Source of the DNA: Macrostomum lignano
Taxonomy: Eukaryota
Assembly: GCA_002269645.1 (NCBI GenBank)
Contig: NIVC01000224.1
Coordinates: 414,185-478,184 of the forward strand
Reading direction: 5' to 3'
DNA: 64,000 nucleotides
Shown here: positions 4,071 to 49,400 of the stretch, piece by piece
How the letters are laid out: each line of letters begins with the position of its first letter
Position numbering within the stretch: the first letter of the stretch is position 1
Made by a program: the position numbers and the translations under genes
Notes under the pieces: generated by a model
Told to the model about the DNA's origin: nothing
What the model saw: only the letters and a program-made list of their open reading frames with translations
Database searches by the model: none

Positions 4071-4903
4071 AAATTTTCTGGTACAGTAAAATATTTTAAA
4101 GGTTTCCAAGTTACCAAAGTTTTAAAAAACCATGTAAGCCTGTTAATTAGATACCAGAATTCTATTATCTCAAAGTTTCCCAAATCCTACAATTCTGAAA
4201 TCCCTAAGCTTCCCATATCCCCAAATTTTGAAATCTCTAATTCCTCAAAACTATTTTGATTTCTGAACTTTAAACTTTCATTTGGCTAGCATAAAATACT
4301 CAATTATACTACTCAATACGAATCTCAATCTAAATACAAGATACTACAAGTTGCATTGCATCTAATGCCAGTATTGCCATCTGTTTTAATGGCGTTTGTG
4401 CTATCCTCAAACCCTATACAGTCAAGGTTAAGCAGTGTTTTACTCAATGAGCTGCTATCATTTTGTAATAACAGTTATTATTTTAATAATGCTAACTAAA
4501 ATACACGTGAAAAAACCATGCTTTTTAGTGTTGTTTTTTTAAATTCATTGTTTAAATTATTTCTCACTGATAAACCAATTAAGTTAACATAATTAAACCA
4601 TAATTAACATTAAAACTCCAGTCAGTACTCCTGGTTCGTAATGTTTATTTAGCACAATGCTGCGGTTTTGACCCTGTTATTTGACCCTGCAATTGTGCTT
4701 GAGTTAAATGTACATTTCGTTTTCGAAAATCGTAATACCCTGAATAGACGTGACCAAATCGATATGCTCTGGGTTTTTATGCATTAGAATCACAATGCAA
4801 TGTGCCATCGTGCGTCGCATTATCTCGAAACTGAATTTTAGCTTGATTATTTTTTATTTTTTTACAGTATAGCTTGGCAAGCATTTATTCTAATTGCAGA
4901 CAA

Positions 4904-6424
4904 ATGGCGGAGCCGACCACTTCCTGCTTTATCAAAGGCTGCACCGATCCTGTGTCTGGCACCGGTGCTCGAATCCGTCAGCCACTGTGTGTAAGACATC
5001 TTGAACAGGACAGGCACAGGGTGCGTGAGCTGCACAGGAATTTACAGACCAAACTGAAGCCATTGCTGGAATTGCAGAAAGAATTCAGGATGCAGCAGCA
5101 AGCTCTGTCAGTTGAGCTGCAAGAGACTGAGGAGCTGTTTGAGTCGGCTGTGGACTCGCTGATGAAGTGGAAGGCAGCTGTGACAAAGCGACTGACTGAG
5201 AGACACGACAGCGTGTTGCAGAATCTGCAGCAGTTGTCCGCTCTGCAGGAGTATGAGCGAGAAGTGACGGAAGCAGAAGAGCACAATGACTTCAATAAGA
5301 TGTTTGAAATTTCTAACGCGTTAGATATAAAGAGTGAAGAGTTGCAGATGACGTGCGACACGACTATTACCGAAGACTCTGAGCGAGGCACTGGAAGGAC
5401 TGTGGGCGATGTGAGCGGCTGTGTGAGAGACTTGCAGCTGCTGATTGACAGACACCTGAGTGATGTGATGCAGCTGTGCGAGTCAGCAGAGCCTCTTACT
5501 GCACAAAAGCCAATCTGTGAGTTTCAGTCTGAAATAAAAGATCTGCCGGGTTCTCCTTTCTATGTAACATCATGCAGCAACACGCAAGGCTTTTACGTGG
5601 ACTCTCAGAGCAAGGTGGTCAAGGAGGTCACTGACAGAGAGCTCCCACAGCCGTGTCTCTTCGTTAGTTTTCATCCTGAGAATAAGATGAACTACCTTCT
5701 TGCCTGTTCAGTAGACGGCAAAGTAAAGGCAAAAGTTCCTCTCGAAATTGACACCTCAGAACCTGTTGCTGGACTCTGCTCTGACAGCAAGCGACAGACT
5801 ATTTATGTTGCGGAGTTTGATGCAGTGAAAGTGACGGACCTGAGCGGCTGCGTGACGCAGGTTTTCAACTCGAGCAGCCTGGGACAGCCAGTCGACTTTA
5901 TTGCTTTGGCCTGCAGCTCTGACAAGATATTTGCTTTGAGCGATGTCAACCCAGAATGGTCAGTGCTGTGCATCGATAAAGACAGCGGTCAGCTGCAGGC
6001 CAACATTACCTTAGTTGGTGTCAGTCTCTCTGGTAAATTCACTGAGGGCATGTCTGTAATCGACAACTCGCTGCTGCTCACTGACTATGAAGGTGGGAAG
6101 CTCTACAAAGTGTGCATCGCCAGCGGTCAGCTGATCTCGACCTACCCGACCAAGCGAAGCCGTTTTAAAAAGTTTTCTGGACCGGTTGGTGTCGCGGCTC
6201 ATCGCTCAGGTCTGCTGTGTGTCAGCGAGTATGCAGAGCATGCGGTTACTTTGATGCGGAGTGACGGCACTGTGCTGCAGACTATCGAACTCGAGGGTCA
6301 AGCTGGCAGTGACGGTGACGAACTTGATGACCCATTTGGCTTGGCGATCGTTGAAGGAAGCCCGAAGCTGCTGGCGGTGTGTCAAGATTCAAAATCGATT
6401 GGCCTTTATAAGCTTACTGTGTAA
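4904..6424 (+). CDS. RING-less TRIM-like protein, copy 1 (506 aa): C-x4-C...C-x2-H zinc finger, coiled coil, NHL-type beta-propeller
   Basis: Intronless ORF; ATG at 4904 4 nt after a TTGCAG acceptor; N-terminal CFIKGC...PLCVRH, heptad-like helical region, NHL-like repeats ([26 protein letters not shown]). Confidence 0.8.
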
Positions 6425-9166: not shown

Positions 9167-10687
9167 ATGTCGGAGCCGACCACTTCCTGCTTTATCAAAG
9201 GCTGCACCGATCCTGTGTCTGGCACCGGTGCTCGAATACGTCAGCCACTGTGTGAAAGACATCTCGAACAGGACAGGCACAGGGTGCGTGAGTTGCACAA
9301 GAATTTACATACAAAGATGAAGCCCTTGCTGAAATTGCAAACCATATTTCGGATGCAGCAGCAAGCTCTGTCAGTTGAGCTGCAAGAGACTGAGGAGCTG
9401 TTTGAGTCGGCTGTGGACTCGCTGATGAAGTGGAAGGCAGCTGTGACAAAGCGACTGACTGAGAGACACGACAGCGTGTTGCAGAATCTGCAGCAGTTGT
9501 CCGCTCTGCAGGAGTATGAGCGAGAAGTGACGGAAGCAGAAAAGCACAATGACTTCAATAAGATGTTTGAAATTTCTAACGCGTTAGATATAAAGAGTGA
9601 AGAGTTGCAGACGACGTGTGGCACGGCGTCTAACGAAGACTCTGAACGAGGCACTGTAAGGACTGTGGGCGATGTGAGCGGCTGTGTGAGGGACTTGCAG
9701 CTGCTGATTGACAGACACCTGAGTGATGTGATGCAGCTGTGCGAGTCAGCAGAGCCTCTTACTGCACAAAAGCCAATCTGTGAGTTTCAGTCTGAAATAA
9801 AAGATCTGCCGGGCTCCCCTCTCCATGTGTCATCAGGCAGCAACACGCAAGGCTTTTACGTGGACTCTCAGAGAAAGGTGGTCAAGGAGGTCACTGACAG
9901 AGAGCTCCCACAGCCGTGTCTCTTCATTAGTTTTTGTCCTAATCATAAGATAAACCACCTTCTTGCCTGCTCAGTCGACGGCTTAGTGAAAGCGCAGCTA
10001 CAGCTCGACATTGATGTCTCAAAAACTGTTGTAGGACTCTGCTGTGACAGCAAGCGACAGAGTCTTTATGTCGCCCAGTTTGATGTAGTGAAAGTGACGG
10101 ACCTGAGCGGCTGCGTGACGCAGGTTTTGAACTCTAGCAGCCTGGGACAGCCAGTCAACTTTTTTGCCTTGACCTGCAGCTCTGACAAGATATTTGCTTT
10201 GAGCAAAGGCAACCCAGAATGGTCAGTGCTGTGCATCGATAAAGACAGCGGTCAGCTGCAGACTAAAATTTCCTTGATTGGAGCCAGTCCCTCTGGTAAA
10301 TATGTCGAGGGCATGTCTGTAATCGACAATACGCTGCTGCTTGCTGACTATGCCGGTGGCAAGCTCTACAAAGTGTGCATCGCCAGCGGTCAGCTGATTA
10401 CGACCTACCCGACCAAGCGAAGTCCTCTGGAGAAGTTTCGTGGAACTGTTGGTGTCGCGGTTCATCCGTCGGGTCTGCTGTTTGTCAGCGAGCGTTCAGG
10501 GCATGTGGTTCGTTTGATGCGGAGTGACGGCACTGTGCTGCAGACTGTCGCAGTGGAGGGTCAGACTGGCATTTGCGGAAGAAAACTTGATAACCCATTG
10601 GGCTTGACGATCATTGAAGGAAGCCCCAAGCTGCTGGCGGTGTGTCAGAATTTAAAATCAATTGGTCTTTATACTTTTACTGTGTAA
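9167..10687 (+). CDS. RING-less TRIM-like/NHL protein, copy 2 (506 aa)
   Basis: Intact ORF paralogous to 4904..6424; ATG 10 nt after TTTCAG acceptor (ends 9156). Confidence 0.8.
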
Positions 10688-15348: not shown

Positions 15349-16863
15349 ATGTCCGAACCGAGCACTTCTTGTTTTATTAAATGCTGCAACGATCCCGCAT
15401 GTGGCACTGGTATTCGAATCCCACAGCCATTGTGTGAGAAACACATTATGCAGGACATAGAAATTGTGCGAGTACTATGCAAAAATATGCAGAAGAAGCT
15501 GAAGCCATGGCTAAAACTGCAAAAAGAATTTCGGATGCAGCAGCAAGCTCTGTCAGTTGAGCTGCAAGAGACTGAGGAGCTGTTTGAGTCGGCTGTGGAC
15601 TCGCTGATGAAGTGGAAGGCAGCTGTGACAAAGCGACTGACTGAGAGACACGACAGCGTGTTGCAGAATCTGCAGCAGTTGTCCGCTCTGCAGGAGTATG
15701 AGCGAGAAGTGACGGACGCAGAAACGCACAATGACTTCAATAAAATGTTTGAAATTTCTGGCGCATTCGATATTGAAAGTGAAGAGTTACAGGTGGTATT
15801 TGGCACGACTATTACCGAAGACTCTGAGCGAGGCACTGGAAGGACTGTGGGCGATGTGAGCGGCTGTGTGAGGGACTTGCAGCTGCTGATTGACAGACAC
15901 CTGAGTGATGTGATGCAGCTGTGCGAGTCAGCAGAGCCTCTTACTGCACAAAAGCCAATCTGTGAGTTTCAGTCTGAAATAAAAGATCTGCCGGGTTCCC
16001 CTCTCCATGTGTCATCAGGCAGCAACACGCAAGGCTTTTACGTGGACTCTCAGAGAAAGGTGGTCAAGGAGGTCACTGACAGAGAGCTCCCACAGCCGTG
16101 TCTCTTCATTAGTTTTTGTCCTAATCATAAGATAAACCACCTTCTTGCCTGCTCAGTCGACGGCTTAGTGAAAGCGCAGCTACAGCTCGACATTGATGTC
16201 TCAAAAACTGTTGTAGGACTCTGCTGTGACAGCAAGCGACAGAGTCTTTATGTCGCCCAGTTTGATGTAGTGAAAGTGACGGACCTGAGCGGCTGCGTGA
16301 CGCAGGTTTTGAACTCTAGCAGCCTGGGACAGCCAGTTGACCTTATTGCTTTGTCCTGCAGCTCTGACAAGATATTTGCTTTGAGCAAAGGCAATCCAGA
16401 ATGGTCAGTGCTGTGCATCGATAAAGACAGCGGTCAGCTGCAGACCAACATTACCTTAGTTGGTGTCTGTCCGTCCGCTAAATCCATCGAGGGAATGTCA
16501 TTAATTGACAACGCGCTGCTGCTCACAGACTATGCTAATATTTACAAAGTGTGCATCGCCAGCGGTCAGCTGATCTCGACTTACCCGACCAAGCGAAGTC
16601 GCCTTGAAAAGTTTCGTAAATGTGCTGGTGTCGCGGCTCATCGGTCGGGTCTGCTGTTTGTCAGCGAGTATTCAGGGCAAGTGCTTCGTTTGATGCGGAG
16701 TGACGGCACTGTGCTGCAGACTGTCGATGTCGAGTCTCAGACTGGCAGTGGCAGGAGAAATGTTGATAGCCCGTTTGGCTTGGCGATCATTGAAGGGTGC
16801 CCGAAGGTGCTGGCGGTGTGTCAATATTCAAAATCCATTGGCCTGTATAAGTTTACTGTGTGA
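15349..16863 (+). CDS. RING-less TRIM-like/NHL protein, copy 4 (504 aa)
   Basis: Intact ORF paralogous to copies 1 and 2; ATG 10 nt after TTTCAG acceptor (ends 15338). Confidence 0.8.
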
Positions 16864-17359: not shown

Positions 17360-17957
17360 CCCCAAGCCTTCCAAATCCCCCAAGCTTCCCAAATCCCTTA
17401 TGCTTCCCAAATCCCCAAGCTTCCCAAATCCCCCATGCTTCCCAAATCCCCCAAGCTTCCCAAATCCCCCAAGCTTTCCAAATCTACCCAGGTTCCCGAA
17501 TTTCCCAAGCTTCCCAAATCCCCCAAGCTTTCCAAATCTATCCAGGTTCCCGAATTTCCCAAGCTTCCCAAATCCCCCATGCTTCCCAAATCCCCCAAGC
17601 TTCCCAAATCCCCAAGCTTCCCAAATCCCCCATGCTTCCCAAATCCCCCAAGCTTTTCAAATCTCCCAAGCTTCCCAAATCCCTCAAGCTTTCCAAATCC
17701 CCTAGCTTCCAAAATCCCCCAAACTTCCCAAATTCCCAAGCTTCCTAAATTCCCAAGCTTCCTAAATTCCTAAGCTTTCCAAATCTACCCAGGTTCCCAA
17801 ATCCCCCAAGCTTCTCATATCTCCCAAGTTTCCCAAATCCCCCAAGCTTCCCAAATCCCCCAAGCTTCTCAAATCCCCCCGCTTCCCAAATCCCCCAAGC
17901 TTCTCAAACCCCTAAGTTTCAGAAATACCCAAGCTTTTCAAATCCCCCAAACTTCAA
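17360..17957. repeat. About 18-bp minisatellite (CTTCCCAAATCCCCCAAG)n
   Basis: Tandem copies; generates PKSPKL-type spurious ORFs. Confidence 0.92.
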
Positions 17958-18032
17958 AAATCTTTTAAACTCTAAGCCGTTTTTTAATTGTGTCTTACTG
18001 ACTCTCAGTTCTGTGTAAATATTGCAGTTATT

Positions 18033-20830
18033 ATGAAACAAAATATGGTCTCCGCTATCAAGTCTGGCCAGAGTCCCAACGCGGACACATTCGATGACCT
18101 GCCACTAAACGATACACTGAAACGCTCCATCCGTAACCATGGTTTTATCGAACTGTCTACAATTCAAAATCAAGCTTTCCCTTTGTACTTGAATGGGGAA
18201 AATGTGTTTGTTCAGTCACCGTCTGGCACTGGCAAGATGTCTATGGCCGCAATTTCAGTTCTGCAATCAGTGAAACTCCCAAGTTTGAGCTCTACAAATC
18301 CTGACAATCCTGTTCTGAGTCGTACTGCTCAAGCTTTGGTGCTGACTCCGACTAGGGAGATGGCTCTGTCAGCGAGCTGCATGTTTAATGACCTGGGAAA
18401 ATCAATGGGCGTATTGTGTTGCGCCTGCGTTGGAGGTATTAAGGTTTGTGATTTGGCGTATCGAATAGTTCTATTGGCGTTGTCTATTAATTATGCCATA
18501 ATTATTTATTAATCGTTCGATCCCATTTCCCCAGCCGCGGGATCAGAAGACTGAGCTAGATGCAGGCGTGGACATTGCGATCGGCACCCCAGGCCGAGTT
18601 GAAGACTTAATCAATCGAGGATGGTTGAGCACTGCTCAGATACGATTGATAATCCTCACTGAGACCGACGATTTGATTAGACGAGGTTTCAAAAACAATC
18701 TGATTAACATAACTAGTCAGATGCCTGAAGGTTTGCAGGTAGGCTGTGCTGTGCTTTGTTTAAACCTTAAAACAATATATTCCATTTTTTTTAGTAAAGA
18801 GTCGCCGACCAAACTCATTAAAGAATCGCCGTCAAAAACCAAGAAAGAATCGCCCTCAAAAGCCAAGAAAGAATCGCCCTCAAAAGCCAAGAAAGAATCG
18901 CCCTCAAAAGCCAAGAAAGAATCGCCGTCAAAAGCCAAGAAAGAATCGCCCTCAAAAGCCAAGAAAGAATCGCCGTCAAAAGCCAAGAAAGAATCGCCGT
19001 CAAAAGCCAAGAAAGAATCGCCGTCAAAAGCCAAGAAAGAATCGCCCTCAAAAGCCAAGAAAGAATCGCCCTCAAAAGCCAAGAAAGAATCGCCCTCAAA
19101 AGCCAAGAAAGAATCGCCCTCAAAAGCCAAGAAAGAATCGCCCTCAAAAACCAAGAAAGAATCGCCCTCAAAAGCCAAGAAAGAATCGCCGTCAAAAGCC
19201 AAGAAAGAATCGCCCTCAAAAGCCAAGAAAGAATCGCCCTCAAAAGCCAAGAAAGAATCGCCCTCAAAAGCCAAGAAAGAATCGCCCTCAAAAGCCAAGA
19301 AAGAATCGCCGTCAAAAGCCAAGAAAGAATCGCCGTCAAAAGCCAAGAAAGAATCGCCCTCAAAAACCAAGAAAGAATCGCCCTCAAAAGCCAAGAAAGA
19401 ATCGCCCTCAAAAACCAAGAAAGAATCGCCCTCAAAAGCCAAGAAAGAATCGCCCTCAAAAGCCAAGAAAGAATCGCCCTCAAAAGCCAAGAAAGAATCG
19501 CCCTCAAAAGCCAAGAAAGAATCGCCCTCAAAAGCCAAGAAAGAATCGCCCTCAAAAGCCAAGAAAGAATCGCCCTCAAAAGCCAAGAAAGAATCGCCCT
19601 CAAAAGCCAAGAAAGAATCGCCCTCAAAAGCCAAGAAAGAATCGCCCTCAAAAGCCAAGAAAGAATCGCCCTCAAAAGCCAAGAAAGAATCGCCGTCAAA
19701 AGCCAAGAAAGAATCGCCCTCAAAAGCCAAGAAAGAATCGCCCTCAAAAGCCAAGAAAGAATCGCCCTCAAAAGCCAAGAAAGAATCGCCCTCAAAAGCC
19801 AAGAAAGAATCGCCCTCAAAAGCCAAGAAAGAATCGCCCTCAAAAGCCAAGAAAGAATCGCCCTCAAAAGCCAAGAAAGAATCGCCGTCAAAAGCCAAGA
19901 AAGAATCGCCGTCAAAAGCCAAGAAAGAATCGCCCTCAAAAACCAAGAAAGAATCGCCCTCAAAAACCAAGAAAGAATCGCCCTCAAAAGCCAAGAAAGG
20001 ATCGCCCTCAAAAACCAAGAAAGAATCGCCCTCAAAAGCCAAGAAAGAATCGCCATCAAAAGCCAAGAAAGAATCGCCCTCAAAAGCCAAGAAAGAATCG
20101 CCCTCAAAAGCCAAGTAAGAATCGCCCTCAAAAGCCAAGAAAGAATCGCCCTCAAAAACCAAGAAAGAATCGCCCTCAAAAGCCAAGAAAGAATCGCCGT
20201 CAAAAGCCAAGAAAGAATCGCCCTCAAAAACCAAGAAAGAATCGCCCTCAAAAGCCAAGAAAGAATCGCCGTCAAAAGCCAAGAAAGAATCGCCCTCAAA
20301 AACCAAGAAAGAATCGCCCTCAAAAGCCAAGAAAGAATCGCCATCAAAAGCCAAGAAAGAATCGCCCTCAAAAGCCAAGAAAGAATCGCCCTCAAAAGCC
20401 AAGTAAGAATCGCCCTCAAAAGCCAAGAAAGAATCGCCCTCAAAAGCCAAGAAAGAATCGCCCTCAAAAGCCAAGAAAGAATCGCCCTCAAAAGCCAAGA
20501 AAGAATCGCCGTCAAAAGCCAAGAAAGAATCGCCCTCTAAAGCCAAGAAAGAATCGCCCTCAAAAGCCAAGTAAGAATCGCCCTCAAAAGCCAAGAAAGA
20601 ATCGCCCTCAAAACTCATCAAAAGCCATCAAAGAATCGTCTTTCAACTTCCTGAAAAGTTCATCTAGCACTTTAAAGAAACGCCATGCCGCTGACTAAAG
20701 CTCCGAACCTCCATCATTTCAGGTGCTGATATTCTCGCCTACAGCTCCAGTTGAATTGATGGAATTGTTAAACAGTTTGAACTTGAACCCAAGCCCAGTG
20801 CATGTTCGACCTAATCTGGACCGACCGTAA
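18033..20830 (+). CDS. eIF4A-like DEAD-box protein, N-terminal RecA domain only, catalytic motifs degenerate (240 aa; exons 18033-18443, 18535-18738, 20723-20830)
   Basis: Q motif (GFIELSTIQNQAF), motif I SPSGTGKM, Ia PTREMA, GG, Ib TPGRV, motif II TETD, motif III SPT, then TAA at 20828; GT-AG introns keep frame. Confidence 0.8.
18820..20635. repeat. 24-bp minisatellite (AAGAAAGAATCGCCCTCAAAAGCC)n, about 75 copies, in intron 2 of the eIF4A-like gene
   Basis: Highly homogeneous tandem array; reads KKESPSKA in the frame of exon 2. Confidence 0.97.
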
Positions 20831-21394
20831 AACTTGATATCTGATTAACGAATCTAACTTTTTGCTCCAACCTAATTATTGCCTTAATCATGTCACATCT
20901 AATCATTCAGTATCCTTGTTGTTATCGCACTGCGAACTTGGCAGTTATAAATCATGTTTCCATCTATACTAAAAAAAATAATGAAGAATCTGAATGAACG
21001 CCGTTCTAAGACCTAATTACACGAGCAGAGCCAATCACTTTTAATTGCAGCTTATAGCGACCTTGACAAAAAGCCGAAGCTGTGATGTAAATTCGTATTT
21101 TATATATTTTTTATTCTAAAATTGTTTTAATAATTGAAAAATATACTATGCAAAACTTTTCAAGCTTTTTATTTTCTTACTAAAAGTATATGTTTTAGTC
21201 ATTGTCTAATAATTTTAACTCCCTGTTGGGTAGACAAAAGTTTTTTTTCTACTAGAGTTTTAGATGTTTTAGAATGTCCAAAGAAGTTGAGAAAGCTCAA
21301 TAATAGCAAAAATCTGAAATTGCATTTTTTCTAGCCTAAAATTCGACTTCCCACTATTTCACTGTCAGCAATTAGGGTTGCGGTTAAGGGTTTA

Positions 21395-22609: not shown

Positions 22610-25600
22610 ATGGTGAAGCATCACAAAAAGAAAGAGAAAAATGCCGACTTCACTAAAGTGCGCCTGAAAGTTGGTCGTAAGTTGCCGAAATGCCTGAACG
22701 AAACAAAAATCAGTTTGGCTACAGGTAAAATTGTTGTTCGCGGTCAGGAGTCCGCCGCTAGCTCGGCTGATTTGGCATCTCCGGCCAGCCAGCCACTGCA
22801 GTGGTCCACGGGCCAGGCTCTGTTGCGAAAACTGAGAGCCAGCCAGATGGACGAGCGAGTGGCCGCGGCTAACAAGTTGGCCAGGTTCGTGTTTGGGATA
22901 AGTTTTGGACTTGATTGTAATGAGTTGATTAGGGATGTTTAGATATTTACTGTAAGTAATATAATAAATATCTAATAATAAATATCTAAGTAAATATCTA
23001 AAAAATCCCCCTTAAAACGCATCCAAGAATCTCCCTCAAAAGCCACCAAAGAATCACCCTTGAGAGCCATTAAAGAATCACTCTCAAAAAACCCATCAAA
23101 GAATCGCCCTCAAAAGCCATCAAAGAATCGCCCTCAAAACTCATCAAATAATCGCCCTCAAAAGCCATCAAAGAATCGCCCTCAAAACCCGTCAAAAAAT
23201 CGCCCTCGAAACTCATCAAAGAATCGCCCTCAAAAGCCATCAAAGAATCGCCCTCAAAAGCCATCAAAGAATCGCCCTCAAAAGCCATCAAAGAATCGCC
23301 CTCGAAACTCATCAAAGAATCGCCCTTAAAAGCCATCAAAGAATCGCCCTCAAAACTCATCAAAGAATCGCCCTCAAAACTCATCAAAGAATCGCCCTCA
23401 AAACTCATCAAAGAATCGCCCTCAAAACTCATCAAAGAATCGCCCTCAAAACTCATCAAAGAATCGCCCTCAAAACTCATCAAAGAATCGCCCCTCAAAA
23501 CCCGTCAAAAAATCGCCCTCGAAACTCATCAAAGAATCGCCCTTAAAAGCCATCAAAGAATCGCCCTCAAAACTCATCAAAGAATCGCCCTCAAAACTCA
23601 TCAAAGAATCGCCCTCAAAACTCATCAAAGAATCGCCCTCAAAACTCATCAAAGAATCGCCCTCAAAACTCATCAAAGAATCGCCCTCAAAACTCATCAA
23701 AGAATCGCCCTCAAAACTCATCAAAGAATCGCCCTCAAGTACCTGAAAGCCCACCCCACTGCAATGCTCAGGTGGCTGGCAGACCTGGCTGCCGCTCAGC
23801 AAGAGCAGCAGCAACGCAACCGGCCAGTGCCATTCACAGTGCAGGATCTGACCGAGTACCTGTCCCCATGCCTTCGCGATCCAGCCAGCGCAGAACTGCG
23901 ATCAGCCTGCCGACGTGTCTTCACCGCCCTGCTCACCTGCGGCGTTGCCAGTCAGCCAGTGTGCCGGCCTGCTCTGTTCCAGTCTCTGCGCACCTGTTGG
24001 TGTCACGTGGACGAATCAATTCAAAACGAATCGGTACAACTACTCGAGTCCTTGCTAACTCACGCTCCCATTGTACTGTTGGAACGTGCTGACGATTTTC
24101 GAGCGTTGCTCAATCGAAGTTTGAAGAGGCGTTTAACTGCGACAGTGCCAACAGGGGCATCAGCGGCTGCTGCTGGTGCGGGTGTTGCTTCAGCTTCGGT
24201 GGCTCAGCGAAGTCGAGGCCAGCTGATGTCGCTGGCTGCCTGTGTGGCCAGCTTTGCCGACCTGCTGGCTGAGAACTACTCTTCTGGTAAGTGCCCTCAA
24301 AAGCTATCAAAAAATTGCCCTCAAAGCCATAAAAATCGCCCTCAAAGCCATAAAAAATCGTCCTCAAAAGTCATAAAAATTCGCCTTCAAAAACCATAGA
24401 AAAATCGCCCTCAAAAGCCATAAAAAATCGCCCTCAAAAGCCAGAAAAAATCGCCCTCAAAAGCCAGAAAAAATCGCCCTCAAAAGCCAGAAAAAATCGC
24501 CCTCAAAAGCCCGAAAAAATCGCCCTCAAAAGCCAATACAGAATCGCCCTCAAAGAATTGCCATTAAAAATTGCCATCAAAAGCCAGAAAAATCGCCCTC
24601 AGAAGCCATTAAAGAATGGCTTTGATGCCATGCAGCGCTGACGATCGTTGGAGGGAGTGTGGTCGGTTGTAGCCTAGCCGTCAGAGCGTCGGACTCACGA
24701 CTGAAAGGTCGGGGGTTCGATTCCCAATCCCACTCGGAACAATTTGTGTTCAATTGAGCAAGACACTTAACTCTGCATTGCTTCAGTTCACCCAGCTGTA
24801 AAATGGGTGTCAGGATTAGCTGGGGATAATTGAGGGTCCGCAATAGCTGCAGCTGAGCTGTCGGTTGCACAACTGCCCATTAGCGCTGACTCCGTACTGT
24901 GTACTGTGTACAGCGGCCCTGTCATTCACGTGACATCGTGACATCGTGGAAGATAACTTTTCCGTTTTTTTTATTCTTTAACCCACCACTTTCAGCTTCC
25001 CAGTTGAGCAGCTCAGATGCTTCATCATCTGCTCAGTACCAGCAGAGTAGGATTCTCGACTACCTACCGGAAGATTTCGATTTAAACAGCGCGGCTTGGT
25101 CCCGCTATCAGCTCAGCTGGAACTGCGACCTGGCGGCTACGGACTCGGATCCTACAGCTCTGGTTGGCTTAGCCATATCCGATCTTTATAACAGCAGCAG
25201 TAACAAAGACAAAGATCTACTTGTCGACGATGCAGAGACTGGCGGCGCAGAATCTTCAATTAGCAGCGATAGCAGTAGTTTTGAAGTGAATTTTGCTAGC
25301 CTAATTAAAGAGCTGTTTCCCGCTGAGTTCTCTGGTCGAGTTGGCGGCGTGAACGCTTATGAAGAGTTGCTGGCTTTGTTGAAGTGTCTGAGAAGCTTGT
25401 TGGCCTTGCATTTTGCTCGCACCGCTGCCGGGAGGCGAGACAGGGGCGGTGACAATCTAGTAGGCTCTGAGGAGCGGTGGTGGCAGTGTGATTGTTTCAC
25501 CGCTGGAAAACCTAATAATGGTAACATCTTTTGACACTTTGAATGCCTAAATAGATTGATATTGTATTATGAGTTCGAAATTCTGCTGTGTGAAATCCTA

Positions 25601-27113
25601 GCTAGTCAGTGAAATACCAGTTAAGGAAATTCTAGTTAGGGAAATCCCAGTCAGGGAAATCCTAGTCAGGGAAATCCTAGTTAGGGAAATCCCATTCAAG
25701 GAAATCCTAGTTAGTGAAATGCCAGTTAAGGAAATTCTGATTAAGGAAATTCTAATGCGGGAAATCCCAGTCAGGGAAACCCCAGTTAGGGAAATCCCAG
25801 TTAGGGAAATCCAAGTTAGAGAAATTCCAGTCAGGAAAATCCTTGTCAGAGAAATCCCAGTCAGGGAAATCCCATTCAAGGAAATCCTAGTAAGAGAAAT
25901 CCCAGTTTGGGAAATTCCAGTCAGAGAAATCCCAGTCAGGGAAATCCCAGTTAGGGAAATCCCAGTTATAGAAATACCAGTCAGGGAAATCCTAGTCAGT
26001 GGAATACCAGTCAGGGGAATCCCATTCAGGGAAATCCTATTCAGGGAAATCCCAGTCAGGGGAATCTCAGTCAGGAAAATCCCAGTCAAAGAATTGATTA
26101 TTTAATAGATTAATTGTTCGTTGGGATGATCCATTAGTTGAACGACAATTTCCGCAGGTTAATTAATCACAGTACTTCCTTTACAATCAAACGTCAGGTC
26201 TCATTAACCCAACCCAAACCCCCACCTCATCTCTGCTCCAGACTCCGGCAGAAAGCGCTCCAACCAAAAGCGGTTCACACCCTGTCAGCTGGCTGTGTCA
26301 GACCTACTGTCGTCAGTCCTGTGTCCCCTGTTCCCCCTGACCGTGTCGACGACTGCGGACTCGTCTTCAGCCGGCTCCGGTCAGGCTAACAAGAAGCGTC
26401 GCAAGAACCACGGCGGCAGAGACGCACTGAAAGACTTGGCAAGGAAATCTACGGAGCTCAATAATGCGATAGTGGAGTGCGCCCTGCTGGCGGGTCCCCA
26501 GCTGCAGGCCTGTCTCGGTCAGGCTAACACTGACGCCTTCGCTTTGGCCGTCTATAACTACTTAGCTGCTAGATACTCCAATACAAGATCTTCTACAGCT
26601 AAAATACTGGCTACAGATACTACTTATTGGCTAAATGCCAGTAGTAGATTGGTTTGCCAACACCTGGACAGCAGTCCTCTGGCTAGACTGTTTCTAGCCT
26701 TCTTTGCCGATTCGATGCGTAAAAATCGATTCGAACAGCCGGATATTGTTGCCGATTTTCTAGTGAATTTAGCTACTTATAGCAGTAGTATTAGTAGCGT
26801 CTGTCGGCAGAGTTTGGATTTTCTACCGCAATATCTGATTGATCGATTCGATGCTGCCCAGCTTCACTTGTTGCCGCCTGTGTCAGCTTCTTCTTCTTCA
26901 TCATCGAAGTTGCTTAACAGCGCCAGTCCTGAGCAACAGTCGGCCTGTTCCGCTGTTTGCTGTCTTCTGCTTTTGCTGGCTAGCCAATTTCCTGGAGCTG
27001 AAGAGGCTGCGATTGCTGCTTGCGACAGGCTGGTGCGCTACTGTCCCGATCGGCTGTTGAGAAGGAGTTTGAGTGCTTCTCTAGCCTCTGTTGGCAACGC
27101 TGCTTCCGTTTAA
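22610..27113 (+). CDS. TEX10: TEX10/Ipi1-like pre-rRNA processing protein (728 aa; exons 22610-22884, 23772-24286, 24996-25520, 26242-27113)
   Basis: N-terminus MVKHHKKKEKNADFTKVRLKVGRKLPK...NETKISLATGKIVVRGQ matches the Ipi1/TEX10 signature; following helical HEAT-like region; four exons join in phase (2,1,1) to 2187 nt. Confidence 0.75.
23020..23739. repeat. 24-bp minisatellite (AAAGAATCGCCCTCAAAACTCATC)n in TEX10 intron 1
   Basis: Same GAATCGCCCTCAAAA core as the 18.8-20.6 kb array. Confidence 0.95.
24291..24615. repeat. About 22-bp minisatellite (AAAAATCGCCCTCAAAAGCCAG)n in TEX10 intron 2
   Basis: Starts immediately after the GTAAGT donor; same core as the two arrays above. Confidence 0.9.
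24660..24830 (+). mobile_element. tRNA-derived SINE with CORE-like central domain
   Basis: A box TAGCCTAGCCGT (24670), B box GGTTCGATTCCC (24714), then TTGAGCAAGACACTTAACTC...CAGCTGTAAAATGGG resembling the MIR/CORE-type SINE domain. Confidence 0.65.
25597..26095. repeat. 15-bp minisatellite (GGGAAATCCCAGTCA)n in TEX10 intron 3
   Basis: Tandem copies. Confidence 0.93.
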
Positions 27114-27174
27114 GACTGAGTTTGGCTTGTACTTTTGTTTGTCAGACTGGCTGCTAACTGTCCAATGCTAATTA

Positions 27175-27370
27175 GTTAGGGATTTGGGAGTATGCTAATT
27201 AGCTGGGGATTTAGGAATATGCTAATTAGCTAGGGATTCGGGAATATACTAAGTAGCTAGAGATTTAGGAATATGCTAATTAGCCGGGGATTTACGAATA
27301 TGCTAATTAGCTAGGGATGTGGAAATATGCTAATTAGCTGGGGATTTACGAATATGCTAATTAGCTAAGG
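27175..27370. repeat. 26-27-bp minisatellite (GGGATTTAGGAATATGCTAATTAGCT)n
   Basis: About 7 degenerate copies after the TEX10 stop. Confidence 0.85.
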
Positions 27371-27671
27371 ATATTAATTAGTTATTTGCATTTTTTATCA
27401 ATTAAGTTCATCAGACTAATGTACAGGCCTTGGCCTCCAGTTTAATAAAGGTGTGCATGACCGTTTGCTGTCAGTTGTTTAAATTTTCAAATACATTTGT
27501 GGAAAAGAATTTTTTTTATAATCTTGTCTTATTCATTTTTCGTTAAGCTTAATACAATTAGCAGTTAGATTTTTAGACAAACAAATTTGAAAGGAAATTT
27601 TGAAAAGTAAATAATTTTTTATATCGTCTAGTTACCTACAAACTGTCAGTTGATCAGCAAAAATTGACTAT

Positions 27672-29101: not shown

Positions 29102-32100
29102 ATGCTTCGTAAATTTAGCGCCTGCCGTCGCTTCCTAAGCAGCAGCAGCAGCAGCAGCTCCTCTTACACTGCATCAGCCTCGCCTGCTCAATCTTCATCA
29201 ACCACGTCGTCGGGTTCTTCAACGCCGTCCCATCTGGACGGTCCGGAGCTGCTGTTGCCGCGAAGTGGTCACTTCTATTTGGATCCGTTTACGCCAGCTG
29301 ACTATGCTGAGCGAAGGTGCGCGAAATGCTTTAGAAATGGCTGGCCTGTGGCCTTGTTGAGTGCTGCTTTTTGGACTTTGGGTTCTGCTCTCTACAGCTG
29401 CCTGCTGGGTTGCCGCGCGCTTCCTTCTTCCGCTCTCCCTCTTCTTGCTCTTCATCTCCCTCTTTATCTCACTCTCATCCCCTCCCTCCACTTTACACCT
29501 CCCTCTCGCCCCCTCTCCCTGTCCTTATCTCTCTCACCCTCTCCCTCTTCATGTCCCTATCTCTCTCTCACCCTCTCCCTCTTCATGTCCCTATCTCTCT
29601 CTCACCCTCTCCCTCTTCATGTCCCTATCTCTCTCTCACCCTCTCCCTCTCCCTGTCCCTATCACTCTCTCACCCTCTCCCTCTCCCTGTCCCTATCTCT
29701 CTCTCACCCTCTCCCTCTCCCTGTCCCTATCTCTCTCTCACCCTCTCCCTCTCCATGTCCCTATCTCTCTCTCACCCTCTCCCTCTTCATGTCCCTATCT
29801 CTCTCTCACCCTCTCCCTCTCCCTCTCCCTGTCCCTATCACTCTCTCACCCTCTCCCTCTCCCTCTCCATGTCCCTATCTCTCTCACCCTCACCCTCTCC
29901 CTCTCCCTGTCCCTATCTCTCTCACCCTCTCTCTCTCTCACCCTCTCCCTCTCCATATCTTTCTCATCCGCTTTCTTCACGCCCCCGTTAGAGATAAAGC
30001 GTCAGAACTGAAATGTTATTTTCGATACATATCGGACATCTGCAAAGTCTTAGCTGCACTCTTATCTGTTGAATTTATGGGGAAACTGACAGTTACACGA
30101 CTTCACCAACAACTTGCAACTGATTAGATGGTTAATGCGATGTCGGTCAGGAGGCAAGCAGTTGGCCCGGACTCGTTTTATCTTCAGCTACAGCAGTGAA
30201 CACACTGATGGTGTTTTGGGAGATTTGCCAGTTAATTATGACTGGCATATCTAGTTAGGGAGGCCGAAGCCTAGCGGTCTAGCGCAGGCTCTGATGTGCC
30301 AGCGGCCCAGGCTCGATTCCAAATGCAGTCACATTAACTTGGGGCTAAATTAGAATCTCGGCTTGGCTCTGCTCGTGCAATTAACGGCCTTGAGAGCCAG
30401 CTCCCAAAGGCGCAGTGAAGTGTACATGCCTAACGATAAACAAAGGGCCTGTGTGAGTGTGTGTCTGTGTCTCCCTCCCTCTCCCTCCGCGCGCTTGTGT
30501 GCCTGCTCAGGGGAGTCGGCGGAACGGGTAGTAATGCCTCTCGCCGGTTGTGTGACAATGCCGCTTCTTAAAGTGCGCCAGGGATACTGTTCTAATAAAA
30601 AACATATCTAGTTATTATACTAGCGTAGTATCTGCGATCTAGTCAGTTGCAATACTGTACGCAAGCACTCACTCACACACTCTCTGTATCTTTCAACCCC
30701 TCCCCAGACGCCTCCTATTCGAAGAGTTCACCCGCCGATGGTCAACCGACAAGCAGTTCGCGGATTTCGACCGTCACATACTACTGGTACCGTCGGCTCA
30801 GCAGCAGTTCATGGCGCATCACGTGCCCTATACTATGCGGCAGAATTCTTATTTCCGCTACCTGACCGGGCACCTGGGCGCCGATGCCATGCTGGTACTG
30901 GCTTGCAACGGCGGTCCGGGTGTCAGCGACTTTGACACGGCGCGCCTGCTGGTGCATCGACAGTCGGAGACTGAGCGACTGTGGGACGGCGGTGAGCCGA
31001 CGCCCGTTGAAGCTGCTCAACGGGCGGGCCTGCCAGATCCGGCTAATTCTGGACTGTACACCGAGGATGAGGAGGCGGCCAAGTTTTTGGCTGATCAGAT
31101 GACTAGCGCTAAGGGAAAGTGAGTTCAGTGTATTCTCTTTTTGATAAAGATCATATTTTCTATTGGGCAACGTCTGAAGTCTTTGTTTTAGTCTATACTT
31201 GGTCTTTGGTCTTTGGTTTAATTAAAACTTGAGTCTTTGTTTTAGTTCAAACTTGAGCCTTTGTTTCAGTTGGGATTTGAGTCTTTGTTTCAGTTGAGAC
31301 TTGAGTCTTTGTTTTAGTTGAGGCTCGAGTTTTTGTTTTTGTTAAGACTTAAGTCTGTTTTAATTAAGATTTGAGTCTTTGGTTTAGTTTAGACTTAAGT
31401 CTGTTTTAATTAAGATTTGAGTCTTTGGTTTAGTTTAGACTTAAGTCTGTTTTAATTAAGATTTGAGTCTTTGGTTTAGTTTAGACTTAAGTCTGTTTTA
31501 ATTAAGATTTGAGTCTTTGGTTTAGTTTAGACTTAAGTCTTTGTGTGGGACTTGAGTCTTTGTTTTAGTCTATGCTTGAGTCTTTGTTTTAGTTTAGACT
31601 TAGTCTTTGTTTCAGTGAGACTTAAGTCTTTGTTTCAGTTGATTATTAAGTCCTTGTTTAAGTTGAGACGCGATTCTTTCTTTTAGTTAACACTTGAGTC
31701 TTTGTTTCAGTTGAGGCTCGAGTCTTTGTTTTTGTTAAAACTTAAGTCTGTTTTAATTAAGATTTGAGTCTTTGTTTAAGTTAAGGCCTACTTTAAAAAG
31801 CTATCAGTATTGATTTTTGTGCTCCAGTTCAGTCTTTATGTCTGGAATTATTTATATGTAATCATTAAGCTGATTGGATATTTCAATACTTCTATTAATT
31901 GTCAAATTTGATTGAGTTAATCTATAAACATGGAGTCTGCAGACTTCTGAAACTTCTGTTGGTCAGAGAGGCTCAGCAGTGTTAAGGGTAGGGTATAAAG
32001 ATGTTGAGCGTTTTATTTGATTATGAATTTTTGACTGATGCCAGCTGGCTATCCTAAATTTAAATCCCTCGGGAGACGCATCCGGTTCTGACGCTTAAAA

Positions 32101-46477: not shown

Positions 46478-49400
46478 ACCACCCCGGACCCGTGCGAGGG
46501 TCTTCGAGCGCCCCGGGTTTTTCCACGCTGAGCCAGGCCTCCCAGCTCACCTGGCTCAGCTGCTTCTCAGAGCTGGAGACGTCGAGTCCAACCCTGGGCC
46601 GGCCTTCCCGTGCGGAGGCTGTGCCGAGGAGGTAGCCAGGGGCTACTCCACCTGCTGCTCCGACTGCGGCCTGTGGTGGCACCGCCGCTGTTCCCGCCTC
46701 ACTATTGCGGCTATCAACCGGCTCCACCGGGACAAGGCACCGTGGCACTGTCCCACCTGCGCCCACCAGCCTGCCGCTTCAGCGCCGCAGCCCGCTGCGA
46801 CTCCGGCCCCTCCGCGGCTGCAGGCTCCACTGGCACCCACCAGACGCCAACGGCTACGACTCCACCTCCCCCGAACCCCGCACCGGCACCCCCGCCCCCC
46901 CTGATGGCGCAACCAGCGCGGGCGGGGCGCCGAACAACAGCGGGGCGGCTTTCCGCATCGTCCAGCTCAACGCGGCAGGGCTCCGCTCCCGCAAGCTGGA
47001 ACTGCTCCACTTCCTGGAGAAGCAGGGCGCCGACGTCGCCTGCATCCAGGAGACGAACCTGTCCGGCAACACAGCGGCCCCACGCCTCAAAGGGTGGCAG
47101 ATCGCTGGCCGGAAGGACCGCAACATCGGCCGCGACGGGGAGGCAGCCAGAACCCACCACGGGGGCGTCTGCTTCCTTGTCAAGGAGGGCATTCAATTCG
47201 CCGACCTTCCTCTAGGCGAGCTCGTCACCCACGCCACGTCCGCCGAAGCCTCGGGCCTCCGTATCCACGACCCCCGGCTACCACGTCCCCTGGATGTGAT
47301 CAAAATCTACCTCCCGCCGGTCCGCGCCGCGGACGGCCGCACGGACGCCTTCGAGCCCGACTGGATCCCCGTTTCACGGGACTCGTTGGTGCTGGGCGAC
47401 TTCAACGCCCACCACGGGATGTGGGACGCCTCGGCGGACGACGACGAGCTGGGCAGGGCCCTCGAAGACTGGGCGACGACCTACGACCTGGTCGCTCTGA
47501 ACGACGGCTCCCCAACTAGGATCAGCCCCCGCGGCCTGCCGAGCTCCCCTGACGTCTCCTTCGCCCACGCCTCCTGGCAAGACCGGATCGAGTGGCGAAC
47601 CGGGGAGCACATCGGCTCAGACCACCTGCCGATCATCATCGACATCGCAGCCTCCGGCCCGGCCCGCTCCAGCTCCAAGCGCCTGACGCGGTACGCCTAC
47701 CACAAGGCGGACTGGGACCTGTTCCAGCGGACCCTCGACCAGGCCCTGGCCAGCTGGCCGGAGCGCCCCCCACGCACGGTGCCCGTCGCCGCCAACCGGT
47801 TCGCGTCCGCCGTCACCAGCGCCGCCAAGGCGGCCATCCCGAGAGGCTGCCGGCGCGCCCCGATCGCCTGGTGGTGCCCGGAAGCCGAGGCGGCCTGCAC
47901 CGCCCGCCGCGCGGCGCTCGAAGCGCTTCGCGCGAGCCCGGACGACCCGGCGCTCTCGGCCGCGTACCAGGCTGCTGCCGCCGCGGCTGCTCACGCCATC
48001 TGCCGCGCCAAGGAGTCGCTGTGGCGTGATTTCATCACTGACCCGGGTCACGACCTGTGTTCCGCCGACCTCTGGCGGATCATCCGGGCCCTCGACGGAC
48101 GGTCCCAGGGCACCCCCTCGTCGGCTGCCATCCAGGGCTCCACGGGGGCACCGGCCGTCTCCGACAAACAGAAGGCCGCGCTTTTCTGCCGGGAGTACGC
48201 GGCCGTCAGCAGGCTCCCAAGAACAAGGCGGAAGACCGGCCGGTCATCCAAGAAGCCCGTCACACGCTTCGCGCCCCCTGCAGCTGCCAAGGCCTCCGCA
48301 GCGGCCCCTGCTCCGACTTCCAGCCCGACGCCCTCCGCCGCGCCTTGGTGCGCCTGCCGGACCGCTCGGCCCCGGGACCGGACGGTGTCGCGAACATCAT
48401 GCTGAAGCATCTGTCCGAACTGGGGCTCCGCTGCCTCCTGGACCTCCTGAACCTCTCGTGGAGGACGGGGGGGTGCCCGCCCCGTGGCGCCTTGCGGAGA
48501 TCCGCCCGATCCCCAAATCGGACAAGCCAGCCGGCCTGACATCCAGCTTCCGCCCTATCAGCCTCCTCAGCTGCCTGGGCAAGCTCGCGGAGAAGATGGT
48601 GAACGAGCGGCTGTCCTACATCCTCGAGGCAAATGACGCTCTCCACCCGTCGCAAGCCGGTTTCCGTCAGGGCCGCTCCACGGAGGAGCACATCGCCGCG
48701 GCGGCCCAGTACATTTTTGACGGTTTCCAGGCCAAGAAGCCGGCAGCCCGCACCGCTCTGCTCCTTGCAGACTTCTCCAGAGCCTACGACCGCGTCTGGA
48801 GAGCCGCCCTCATCGTCAAGCTCGGTCGGAAGGGGATCCCCACGTGCCTCATCCGCTGGCTCAAGGGATTTCTCTCCGACAGGAGGGCCTTCGTGCGGTG
48901 GGTTAGTGCGGCCTGCAAGCCAACCGTGTTCTCCGAGGGGCTGCCGCAGGGGTCGGTCCTCGCCCCGATCCTGTGGGTGATCTACATGGACGACCTCCTG
49001 GACGGCGCCCCCACGAACTGCCTCACGCTGGCGTACGCCGACGACAGCACCTTCGGCGCGCAAGGGACCACCCCTCGGGAGTGTGAGCGGGCCCTGCAAC
49101 CGGCGGCCGACTGGCTCGTGCGCTGGTCCCAAACCTGGAAGGTGGACCTGAGCCGCACCAAGTCGGTCGTCGCTTTCTTCTCGCTCGACCCCCGGGAGGT
49201 CAACGGAAAGGTCCAGCCGCGCATCCTCCTCGGCGACTCGCCAGCTCCGTTCGAGCTGCATCCGAGGCTCCTGGGAGTGCACCTCGACTCCCAGCTGACC
49301 TTCCGCCACCACGCCGAGCTCCGGCGCCGCGCCCTCCAGCAGCGCACCGGCGTCCTACGCTGCCTCGCGGGCCGCGACTGGGGCCAGGACGGCCAGCGCC

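Follow-up and report, generated by a model that had tools for sequence, protein, structure and literature searches.

Can half of a DEAD-box helicase be kept by selection as a protein in its own right? To our knowledge, all activities described for DEAD-box proteins are considered to depend on the two RecA domains together. We analyzed a stretch of 64,000 nucleotides from Macrostomum lignano (contig NIVC01000224.1, positions 414,185 to 478,184 of the forward strand; hereafter the window), in which a preliminary description had recognized an eIF4A-like gene with a single RecA domain and altered catalytic motifs. The locus raises the question of whether this gene is maintained or is a remnant of a longer one, and what its product could do. 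The gene consists of the following parts:

18033-18443, plus strand: exon 1, 411 nt, codons 1-137 (N-terminus, Q motif, motif I, 14-aa loop insertion, motif Ia, GG)
18444-18534, plus strand: intron 1, 91 nt, GTTTGT..CCCCAG, phase 0, splice sites unchanged in the second copy of the gene
18535-18738, plus strand: exon 2, 204 nt, codons 138-205 (motif Ib, TPGRV, and motif II)
18739-20722, plus strand: intron 2, 1984 nt, GTAGGC..TTTCAG, phase 0, mostly minisatellite
18820-20613: minisatellite of 75 copies of a 24-bp unit inside intron 2 (TRF)
20723-20830, plus strand: exon 3, 108 nt including TAA, codons 206-240 (motif III, last helix and strand of RecA1)
20828-20830, plus strand: stop codon TAA, end of exon 3

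The spliced CDS of 723 nt encodes 240 amino acids; all exons are in phase 0 and both introns are of the GT..AG kind. The product matches the UniProt/UniRef entry A0A1I8I7E0 (A0A1I8I7E0_9PLAT, Macrostomum lignano) with 100% identity over its full length, which bears out the earlier reading of three in-frame exons with canonical splice sites. UniProt has automatically named this entry “RNA helicase”. On public contigs the window's own protein has no exact match, and the second genomic copy alone is on record (GenBank PAA50590.1, i.e., Mlig002855.g2), with the same exon structure and the same altered motifs. The absence of frameshifts despite heavy divergence, also claimed before, holds for both copies: reading frame and GT..AG sites are intact at about 63% divergence from eIF4A. 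A scan of the window against Rfam gave no structured RNA matches.

The preliminary description was silent on the minisatellite that fills nearly all of intron 2. The region as a whole is extremely rich in repeats and rearranging, and intron 2 is 1062 nt long in the second copy vs 1984 nt in the window. We considered whether the 24-bp array could be coding, as in the window it continues the frame of exon 2 with KKESPSKA repeats. This was rejected: the open frame is not conserved, because a 5-bp indel just past the donor leads to a stop after 8 codons of read-through in the second copy.

The origin of the protein is clear from several comparisons. A sequence search of the PDB gave 132 bits for eIF4A-I/II, 126 for eIF4A-III, 91 for DDX6 and no more than 104 for any family outside eIF4A, and the nearest library proteins are eIF4As from nematode, plant, fish and fungi. 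The AlphaFold2 model (pLDDT 88.8, pTM 0.86) has every RecA1 element, with uncertainty confined to the first 12 residues and the insertion at 80-100. The best Foldseek matches of this model are the DEAD domains of human eIF4A1 (5zbz and 2g9n; target-normalised TM 0.90-0.93, rmsd 1.6 A), so that a fold like that of eIF4A domain 1 is predicted. The protein thus has a predicted DEAD-box fold with eIF4A as its best match, and the claim that the 240 residues track eIF4A domain 1 agrees with both the sequence score and the fold match. Judged by sequence and model, it is a complete RecA1/DEAD domain derived from eIF4A. The divergence is considerable: over domain 1, identity is 36-38% whichever eIF4A is compared, vs 69-77% between animal and fungal eIF4As.

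A word-indexed search for orthologues or closer paralogues returned the protein's own cluster alone, and among 1.84 billion representatives searched exhaustively no match exceeded 42% identity. No orthologue was found outside M. lignano in these libraries, which may lack the proteomes of other Macrostomum species.

Only one domain is encoded. The DEAD domain is the sole Pfam match (PF00270, 1.9e-29, profile positions 2-165 of 167), and the stop codon comes 28 aa past the SPT of motif III, at the boundary between RecA1 and the linker, close to the 30 aa estimated previously. The absence of domain 2 (motifs IV-VI) was also confirmed. Searching the 64-kb window by tblastn with 150 DEAD-box proteins as queries gave no RecA2 match, and the best hit of a RecA2 profile HMM (--max, six frames, window and second locus) had E=0.67 and lay inside a repeat. 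As a positive control, the RecA1 profile picks up each of the three exons, even exon 3 with its 36 aa (E=8e-6). Neither strand thus encodes RecA2 in the 18 kb upstream of the gene or in the 43 kb after it, so no downstream exon in the window supplies it, and at the second locus there is no RecA2-like coding sequence in the 10 kb downstream. One feature at the end of the gene, read from the sequence and present in both copies, bears on how the second domain could have been lost:

20827-20832, plus strand: donor-like hexamer GTAAAA enclosing the stop codon

Speculatively, an intron may once have begun here, followed by RecA2 exons that have since been lost. Hexamers of the GTAAAA type are frequent by chance.

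Motif states were read from an alignment with canonical eIF4As. The Q motif (GF..STIQ) and the GG motif are retained, and motif Ib is TPGRV. Motif I is SGTGKM instead of the canonical SGTGKT (GKM is encoded at 18231-18239), motif II is TETD instead of DEAD (18658-18669), and motif III is SPT instead of SAT (20735-20743). The P-loop lysine, the glutamate and last aspartate of motif II, and the serine and threonine of motif III are kept. Among the lost residues are the threonine of GKT and the first aspartate of DEAD, both of which coordinate Mg2+, and the alanine of SAT. The three alterations had been pointed out before; the alignment upholds them and finds GKM, TETD and SPT in each copy, neither of which has an intact catalytic motif set (GKT/DEAD/SAT). 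Among the 149 nearest library proteins, GKT is present in 139 and DEAD in 119. As for the RNA-contacting motifs Ia, GG and Ib, the view that they are retained stands for the window copy (PTREMA, GG, TPGRV); in the second copy the motif Ia region reads PSRELA. Because motif Ia differs between the copies, the RNA-contact surface may be drifting. Since RecA2 is missing and motifs I and II have other residues at their Mg2+-coordinating positions, the protein is predicted to be unable to act as an RNA-dependent ATPase or helicase. With its Q motif and P-loop lysine intact, it may still bind an adenine nucleotide.

Is such a protein maintained? The two copies differ by 7 nonsynonymous and 11 synonymous substitutions, i.e., by 18 in all in one pairwise comparison, with dN/dS of 0.19 (binomial p from 1e-3 at kappa 1 to 8.5e-3 at kappa 5). 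For a local comparison, dN/dS is 0.38-0.55 among the g1 paralogues nearby. There are no gap events in 723 exon nucleotides vs 11 in 895 noncoding (flanking and intronic) nucleotides; at the noncoding rate the exons should have about 9 indels, and the probability of observing none is about 1.4e-4. Half of the substitutions (9/18) cluster in codons 95-116, where the ratio of nonsynonymous to synonymous differences (5:5) is not significantly under neutral. Total divergence was rejected as a sign of constraint, since it is no lower in exons (2.5%) than in flanking noncoding DNA (2.1%). The signal is carried by the nonsynonymous/synonymous ratio and the indel contrast alone. With these modest statistics, purifying selection on protein sequence and frame since the split of the copies is shown.

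Neither copy has the stops, frameshifts, lost splice sites or dN/dS near 1 of a decaying pseudogene. The protein is a homologue of an enzyme without essential catalytic residues and domains, and its purifying selection has modest support, as for a pseudoenzyme. Because dN/dS is low, exons have no indels and nothing is disabled at about 37% identity to eIF4A, the gene seems to be a maintained single-domain paralogue, predicted to be catalytically dead, rather than a decaying pseudogene, in line with the preliminary description. That description had also named a lack of orthologues together with dN/dS near 1 as the pattern that would speak against its reading: orthologues are indeed not found outside M. 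lignano, and dN/dS is not near 1. Long-term retention as a half-protein is unproven, since no orthologue was found in other species.

The same data could be explained by a transcribed relic. Not long before the recent genome duplication, rearrangement or the expansion of repeats would have removed the RecA2 exons of a divergent eIF4A paralogue, whose ORF, unbroken so far, would be carried in a polycistronic transcript with no function of the protein. That the gene is known from one species only, that its locus is so repeat-rich and unstable, and that the stop lies inside a donor-like GTAAAA, as if the ORF ran into a former intron, would all fit this origin. So would the equal overall divergence of exons and noncoding DNA; moreover, with 18 substitutions since the split an ORF stays intact by chance 55% of the time. 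However, the synonymous excess and the lack of exon indels indicate constraint after the truncation, and the truncation coincides exactly with the end of RecA1, what is left being a whole domain with a confident fold model. Truncated gene models with eIF4A domain 1 only are frequent in databases, but they keep canonical GKT and DEAD and carry junk tails, which suggests annotation fragments, a different kind of object. We regard a relic as possible, if doubtful.

The annotation argues that the gene is expressed. GenBank annotation of the assembly Mlig_3_7 was made from RNA-seq and transcriptome assemblies (PMC5730564), and it gives the second copy precisely the three-exon model described here. 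On the basis of this RNA-seq-derived annotation, the gene is apparently genuine and transcribed. We found nothing on it in the literature, and its gene ID led to no data on expression or phenotype in full texts or supplements. Three further features concern the way its mRNA may be formed:

15349-16863, plus strand: upstream cistron, the nearest of three tandem TRIM-NHL-like ORFs of about 505 aa (ORF list)
17360-17955: minisatellite of 34 copies of an 18-bp unit, half of the intercistronic spacer (TRF)
18022-18027, plus strand: TTGCAG, candidate spliced-leader (SL) trans-splice acceptor (motif match; sequence identical in both copies)

The M. lignano SL acceptor motif is [T/C]TNCAG (PMC8629364). 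Trans-splicing of the 35-nt SL at TTGCAG would start the mRNA at 18028, 5 nt before the ATG. The 5'-partial GenBank CDS of the second copy begins 3 nt before the ATG, though the frame is open further upstream. The counterpart of the upstream ORF at the second locus is PAA50591.1 (BOX15_Mlig002855g1, i.e., Mlig002855.g1), and the g1 and g2 labels carry one transcriptional-unit number. From the end of the g1-like ORF at 16863 the spacer measures 1164 nt, 596 nt of which are minisatellite, so about 570 nt are left without it; the operon criterion is a spacer below 1 kb (PMC8629364). With a [T/C]TNCAG acceptor motif and a same-strand upstream gene closer than 1 kb after removal of the repeat, our gene is probably an SL-trans-spliced second cistron, the first one encoding the TRIM-NHL-like protein. 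The mRNA should escape NMD, because the stop codon sits in the last exon.

The product of g1 has NHL-propeller matches to TRIM71, Thin and TRIM2 (E 1e-8); its low-confidence model (pLDDT 54) contains a coiled coil followed by an all-beta region. This neighbour suggests another explanation, by analogy: the dead RecA1, possibly nucleotide-bound as the preserved Q motif and P-loop lysine would permit, could serve as an adaptor for the co-transcribed protein in a lineage-specific RNA-regulatory complex, and not as a decoy in cap-dependent initiation. The shared transcriptional unit, the resemblance of the g1 propeller to TRIM71, TRIM2 and Thin, and the precedents of NHL-2 with CGH-1 and TRIM32 with DDX6 (PMC6351104, PMC4357729) speak for it. 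Yet operon membership in trans-splicing animals is no proof of common function, the precedents involve DDX6, full-length helicases and not eIF4A, and dS between the loci is about 0.22 for g1, much above the 0.07 of g2, so the two genes have not been strictly inherited as a pair. We consider this role improbable.

Finally, that the gene model is incomplete, with RecA2 coming from a distant exon, another gene (a split helicase) or an alternative transcript to give a two-domain protein or complex, as the donor-like GTAAAA at the stop and the kilobases of repeats that introns of M. lignano can contain might hint, is very improbable: the RecA2 searches above, over the window and the 10 kb downstream at the second locus, were negative with a method sensitive enough to pick up a RecA1 exon of 36 aa, the same stop codon closes the CDS in two independent annotations, the next downstream genes are an orphan gene and a Xaa-Pro aminopeptidase, and even with RecA2 motifs I and II would be without Mg2+ ligands.

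We estimate at roughly 55% the probability that this is a genuine transcribed M. lignano gene and that its free-standing eIF4A-derived RecA1 is kept as a non-catalytic binding module. Under such a reading, and this is the weakest step, a protein devoid of catalysis would display a surface like that of the eIF4A N-terminal domain. It would compete for, or recruit, partners of eIF4A domain 1, e.g., of the MA3/HEAT2 type, rather than MIF4G partners or RNA. The MIF4G domains of eIF4G and CNOT1 grip mainly RecA2, and stable RNA binding requires both RecA domains; we know of no stable RNA binding or strong MIF4G binding by an isolated DEAD-box domain 1. Because both need RecA2, MIF4G partners and RNA are unlikely targets, and the decoy or dominant-negative role that had been proposed is doubtful for them. 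Partners of the MA3 type are conceivable, although PDCD4 also contacts the eIF4A C-terminal domain (PMC3089569). It seems unlikely that the dead RecA1 is kept as a lineage-specific regulator, acting either together with the TRIM-NHL-like RNA-binding proteins, which evolve fast and would be co-transcribed with it, or through titration of MA3 factors (PDCD4, eIF4G-HEAT2).

At present the gene is an interesting annotated orphan and not a demonstrated regulator, the evidence being one species and one pairwise comparison. If a naturally selected protein with domain 1 only is real, the N-terminal surface of eIF4A has a function of its own, in partner or nucleotide binding, and a helicase-derived example joins the catalogue of pseudoenzymes. 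Were it a lineage-specific regulator as well, this would be the first DEAD-box half-domain in nature to work alone in translational control. The claim can be tested directly, since M. lignano is open to RNAi and transgenesis and has public RNA-seq data.

Several known systems resemble parts of this picture. NHL-2/CGH-1 and TRIM32/DDX6 likewise associate an NHL-propeller protein with a member of the DEAD-box family, here by predicted co-transcription; there the partners are full-length, of DDX6 type and with documented physical interaction, whereas in M. lignano the link is gene adjacency alone. Domain-1-only models, such as A0A0D2Q6J5 of Gossypium and A0A914ZJN2 of Parascaris, are also predicted proteins of about 215-300 aa that end after RecA1; unlike our protein, to which they are at most 42% identical, they have canonical GKT and DEAD/DESD and often junk tails, as in fragmentary models of ordinary genes. 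eIF4A-III of the exon junction complex, the second-best sequence match, is an eIF4A-family binding platform without turnover, but it has both domains and all motifs and clamps RNA with ATP, while the M. lignano protein cannot form a two-domain clamp. Laboratory dominant-negative motif mutants of eIF4A are catalytically dead and interfere by occupying partners; they are full-length and act via eIF4G binding, which is largely RecA2-dependent, and in lacking RecA2 our protein, a predicted dead eIF4A as well, differs from them. From RecA1 of eIF4A-I/II (DDX2A/B; 2G9N, 5ZBZ, 3BOR) it is set apart by its low identity (36-38%), the missing RecA2, GKM/TETD/SPT, and a loop insertion of 14 residues near residues 80-97; at two positions of the rocaglate pocket, E and N stand opposite F163 and Q195 of human eIF4A1. 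For all that, the alignment with eIF4A-I/II spans from the eIF4A-specific N-terminal segment to the last strand of domain 1, and the Q motif, the P-loop GxGK and motifs Ia, GG and Ib are kept.

In genomic DNA of the flatworm Macrostomum lignano, the eIF4A-derived gene, here called the half-helicase, occupies window positions 18033-20830 in three exons:

18033-18443, + strand: half-helicase exon 1
18535-18738, + strand: half-helicase exon 2
20723-20830, + strand: half-helicase exon 3

All exon lengths are divisible by three, both introns are bounded by GT..AG, and the spliced CDS comprises 723 nt (240 codons). The product is identical over its full length (100%) to UniRef A0A1I8I7E0_9PLAT, automatically named "RNA helicase", and clusters with GenBank PAA50590.1 (BOX15_Mlig002855g2, 241 aa, 5'-partial). 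The gene model is therefore already on record; a literature search found no publication on the gene.

The sole Pfam domain is DEAD (PF00270, 1.9e-29), covering almost the full length; Helicase_C was not found in the product. Among all PDB sequences, human eIF4A-I and eIF4A-II match best, by their N-terminal domains (132 bits), followed by eIF4A-III (126), yeast eIF4A (104), Dhh1 (102) and DDX6 (91 bits). The eIF4A-I alignment begins within the eIF4A-specific segment ahead of the Q motif. An exhaustive HMMER search of 1.84 billion cluster representatives returned no protein with more than 42% identity. The nearest were eIF4As of nematodes, cotton, salmonids and fungi; the half-helicase branch is accordingly long, with all of these at an equal distance. 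Its domain 1 shares 36-38% of residues with each canonical eIF4A, versus 69-77% among animal and fungal eIF4As. AlphaFold2, run with a 23-sequence alignment, confidently predicts a complete fold of the first RecA domain, RecA1 (pLDDT 88.8, pTM 0.86), uncertain only at residues 1-12 and in an insertion of 14 residues (~80-97). By Foldseek the model superposes on crystals of the human eIF4A1 DEAD domain (TM 0.90-0.93, rmsd 1.6 A).

Conserved motifs of the half-helicase and of canonical eIF4As
Q motif: GF..STIQ, kept relative to canonical
Motif I: SGTGKM; canonical SGTGKT
Motif Ia: PTREMA; canonical PTRELA
Motif GG: kept; canonical GG
Motif Ib: TPGRV; canonical TPGRV
Motif II: TETD; canonical DEAD
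Motif III: SPT; canonical SAT

Both Mg2+-coordinating residues are gone (Thr in GKT, first Asp in DEAD); the P-loop keeps its Lys and motif II its Glu. Translation stops 28 residues past SPT, just beyond the last RecA1 strand.

No second RecA domain (RecA2) was detected nearby. In tblastn of 150 DEAD-box proteins against the window, matches outside the three exons were noise (best E=0.02, 34 aa). An unfiltered RecA2 profile HMM, run on all six-frame ORF fragments of the window and of the locus of the second copy, gave a best E of 0.67, within a tandem repeat; a RecA1 profile recovered all three exons by the same method, even exon 3 with its 36 aa (E=8e-6). The next downstream genes are an orphan of ~730 aa and an Xaa-Pro aminopeptidase. 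The preliminary description, made from the sequence alone, is thus borne out on three points: in-frame splicing of an intact ORF at canonical sites; altered motifs I, II and III (GKM, TETD, SPT) beside retained Ia, GG and Ib, as aligned with canonical eIF4As; and the absence of domain 2, for which the window holds no downstream exon.

The second copy, PAA50590.1, lies on NIVC01003604.1 of assembly Mlig_3_7 (locus L001), whose synteny with the window begins shortly upstream of the half-helicase and runs through the aminopeptidase. Since M. lignano is a hidden polyploid of recent origin (PMC10468722; PMC5730564), the two copies are homeologues or deep haplotypes. They agree in their three exons, in the splice sites and the stop codon, and in the altered motifs I, II and III. 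Motif Ia differs (PTREMA versus PSRELA).

The earlier reading of a maintained pseudo-enzyme finds modest but consistent support. In the one pairwise comparison that constitutes the selection test, 18 sites differ, seven nonsynonymously and 11 synonymously (dN 0.013, dS 0.068, dN/dS 0.19); the neutral expectation is 69-76% nonsynonymous (kappa 1-5; p = 1e-3 to 8.5e-3). As a local yardstick, neighbouring paralogues of g1, the cistron upstream, show dN/dS of 0.38-0.55. The 723 exon nt contain no gap events, versus 11 in 895 nt of unique intron and flank (P(0) ~1.4e-4). Total divergence is about the same in exons (2.5%) as in noncoding parts (2.1%). Half of the coding differences (9/18) fall together in the 66 nt surrounding motif Ia (18315-18380, codons 95-116), possibly a patch left by gene conversion or a stretch that is relaxed locally; the nonsynonymous/synonymous ratio there is not significant. 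An ORF would stay intact after 18 substitutions in 55% of cases by chance, which is unremarkable alone. The stronger long-term argument for maintenance is that the gene, far as it is from eIF4A, is free of stops, frameshifts and broken splice sites.

Intron 2 (1984 nt in the window, 1062 nt in L001) is for the most part an array of 75 units of 24 bp with 97% match. In the window this array happens to continue the reading frame of exon 2 without a stop for 1.4 kb (KKESPSKA repeats); we rejected this frame as coding, as a 5-bp indel after the donor in L001 ends the reading after eight codons. The 23-24-bp minisatellite family concerned (AAAGAATCGCCCTCAAAAGCCAAG and variants) occupies 18820-20613, 23000-23738 and 24293-24613, filling intron 2 and reappearing within the next downstream gene; one genomic copy has about twice as many of its units as the other (75 versus ~38). 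Minisatellite arrays make up about one third of the window.

The Mlig_3_7 GenBank annotation rests on RNA-seq data and assembled transcriptomes (StringTie, TACO, TBONE) rather than on ab initio prediction (PMC5730564), so that its identical three-exon model of the second copy gives indirect evidence of a transcript. The upstream neighbour of that copy, PAA50591.1 (BOX15_Mlig002855g1, or g1), belongs to the same transcriptional unit, which probably makes the half-helicase gene 2 of a polycistronic unit. The trans-splice acceptor motif for the spliced leader (SL) in M. lignano is [T/C]TNCAG (PMC8629364). TTGCAG (18022-18027 in the window) occurs in both copies, ending 5 nt before the ATG. The 5'-partial GenBank CDS starts just 3 nt before the ATG, with the frame open further upstream, which fits an mRNA 5' end directly after the AG of TTGCAG. 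Joined at 18028, the SL (35 nt, ending in AUG) would create a three-codon upstream ORF, AUG-UUA-UUA-UGA (18028-18036), whose stop would overlap the main start codon (ATGA). NMD is not expected because the stop codon lies in the last exon.

The surroundings contain the following features:

4874-6424, 9167-10687 and 15349-16863, + strand: tandem single-exon g1-like ORFs of ~505 aa each
22900-27400, + strand: orphan gene, annotated 730 aa (L001 14523-18971), containing minisatellite-derived sequence
29105-29419, + strand: first coding exon of the Xaa-Pro aminopeptidase, followed by a CT-rich 34-bp array
46705-50800, + strand: non-LTR (LINE-type) retrotransposon with ORFs for APE endonuclease, reverse transcriptase and RNase H
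55224-57233, + strand: ATG-initiated ORF of 669 aa whose only match, Prominin-like, is weak and below threshold (E 1.3e-4)

The orphan gene is 92-95% identical in nucleotides to its L001 counterpart and has no Pfam domain. The aminopeptidase exon shows 97% amino-acid identity to the second locus, whose product carries AMP_N and Peptidase_M24. The LINE-type element has a GC content of 65-70% against a background of ~45%.

The three g1-like ORFs (mutual identity 79-85%, dS 0.17-0.28, dN/dS 0.38-0.55) have no Pfam match. A long coiled coil is predicted in each, with an NHL-type propeller at the C-terminus (PDB matches TRIM71, Thin and TRIM2, to E=1e-8); the AF2 model is of low confidence. They look like a RING-less TRIM-NHL-like family. 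Their L001 counterpart is g1, co-transcribed with the half-helicase.

Judged by its sequence, the half-helicase is predicted to be incapable of ATP hydrolysis and RNA unwinding, as RecA2, the arginine finger and the Mg2+ ligands are all missing. The intact Q motif and P-loop Lys would leave nucleotide binding without hydrolysis possible. The protein may be kept for a non-catalytic binding role. The preliminary description suggested a decoy or dominant-negative for eIF4G-, PDCD4- or CNOT1-type partners or RNA, and with it a possible lineage-specific translation regulator. MIF4G domains (eIF4G-type, CNOT1-type) hold mainly RecA2, and RNA is clamped between both RecA domains, which makes MIF4G-type and RNA targets unlikely. 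Domains of the MA3/HEAT2 type, as in PDCD4 and the second HEAT domain of eIF4G, touch eIF4A domain 1. PDCD4 also gains affinity from the eIF4A C-terminal domain (PMC3089569).

The co-transcribed g1 family is an alternative lead. TRIM-NHL proteins are RNA-binding translational regulators and partners of the DEAD-box protein DDX6/CGH-1 (PMC6351104, PMC4357729). Adjacency of g1 and g2 (the half-helicase) is no evidence of interaction, and between loci the g1 copies are much more diverged than g2. Gene context is the sole functional lead, the data come from one species, and the half-helicase can be tested in a tractable model organism.

Having introns, the gene is not a retrocopy. Its stop codon lies inside GTAAAA (20827-20832) in both copies; speculatively, an ORF reading into a former intron after loss of the downstream RecA2 exons would give such a stop.

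A literature search found no account of a naturally maintained DEAD-box half-protein. Other genomes also have short eIF4A entries with domain 1 only; these keep GKT and DEAD, have junk tails and look like fragmentary models. The most fitting label for the half-helicase is a single-domain pseudoenzyme derived from eIF4A. Despite this homology, two defining features of a DEAD-box helicase are missing: its catalytic motifs are not intact, and there is no second RecA domain.
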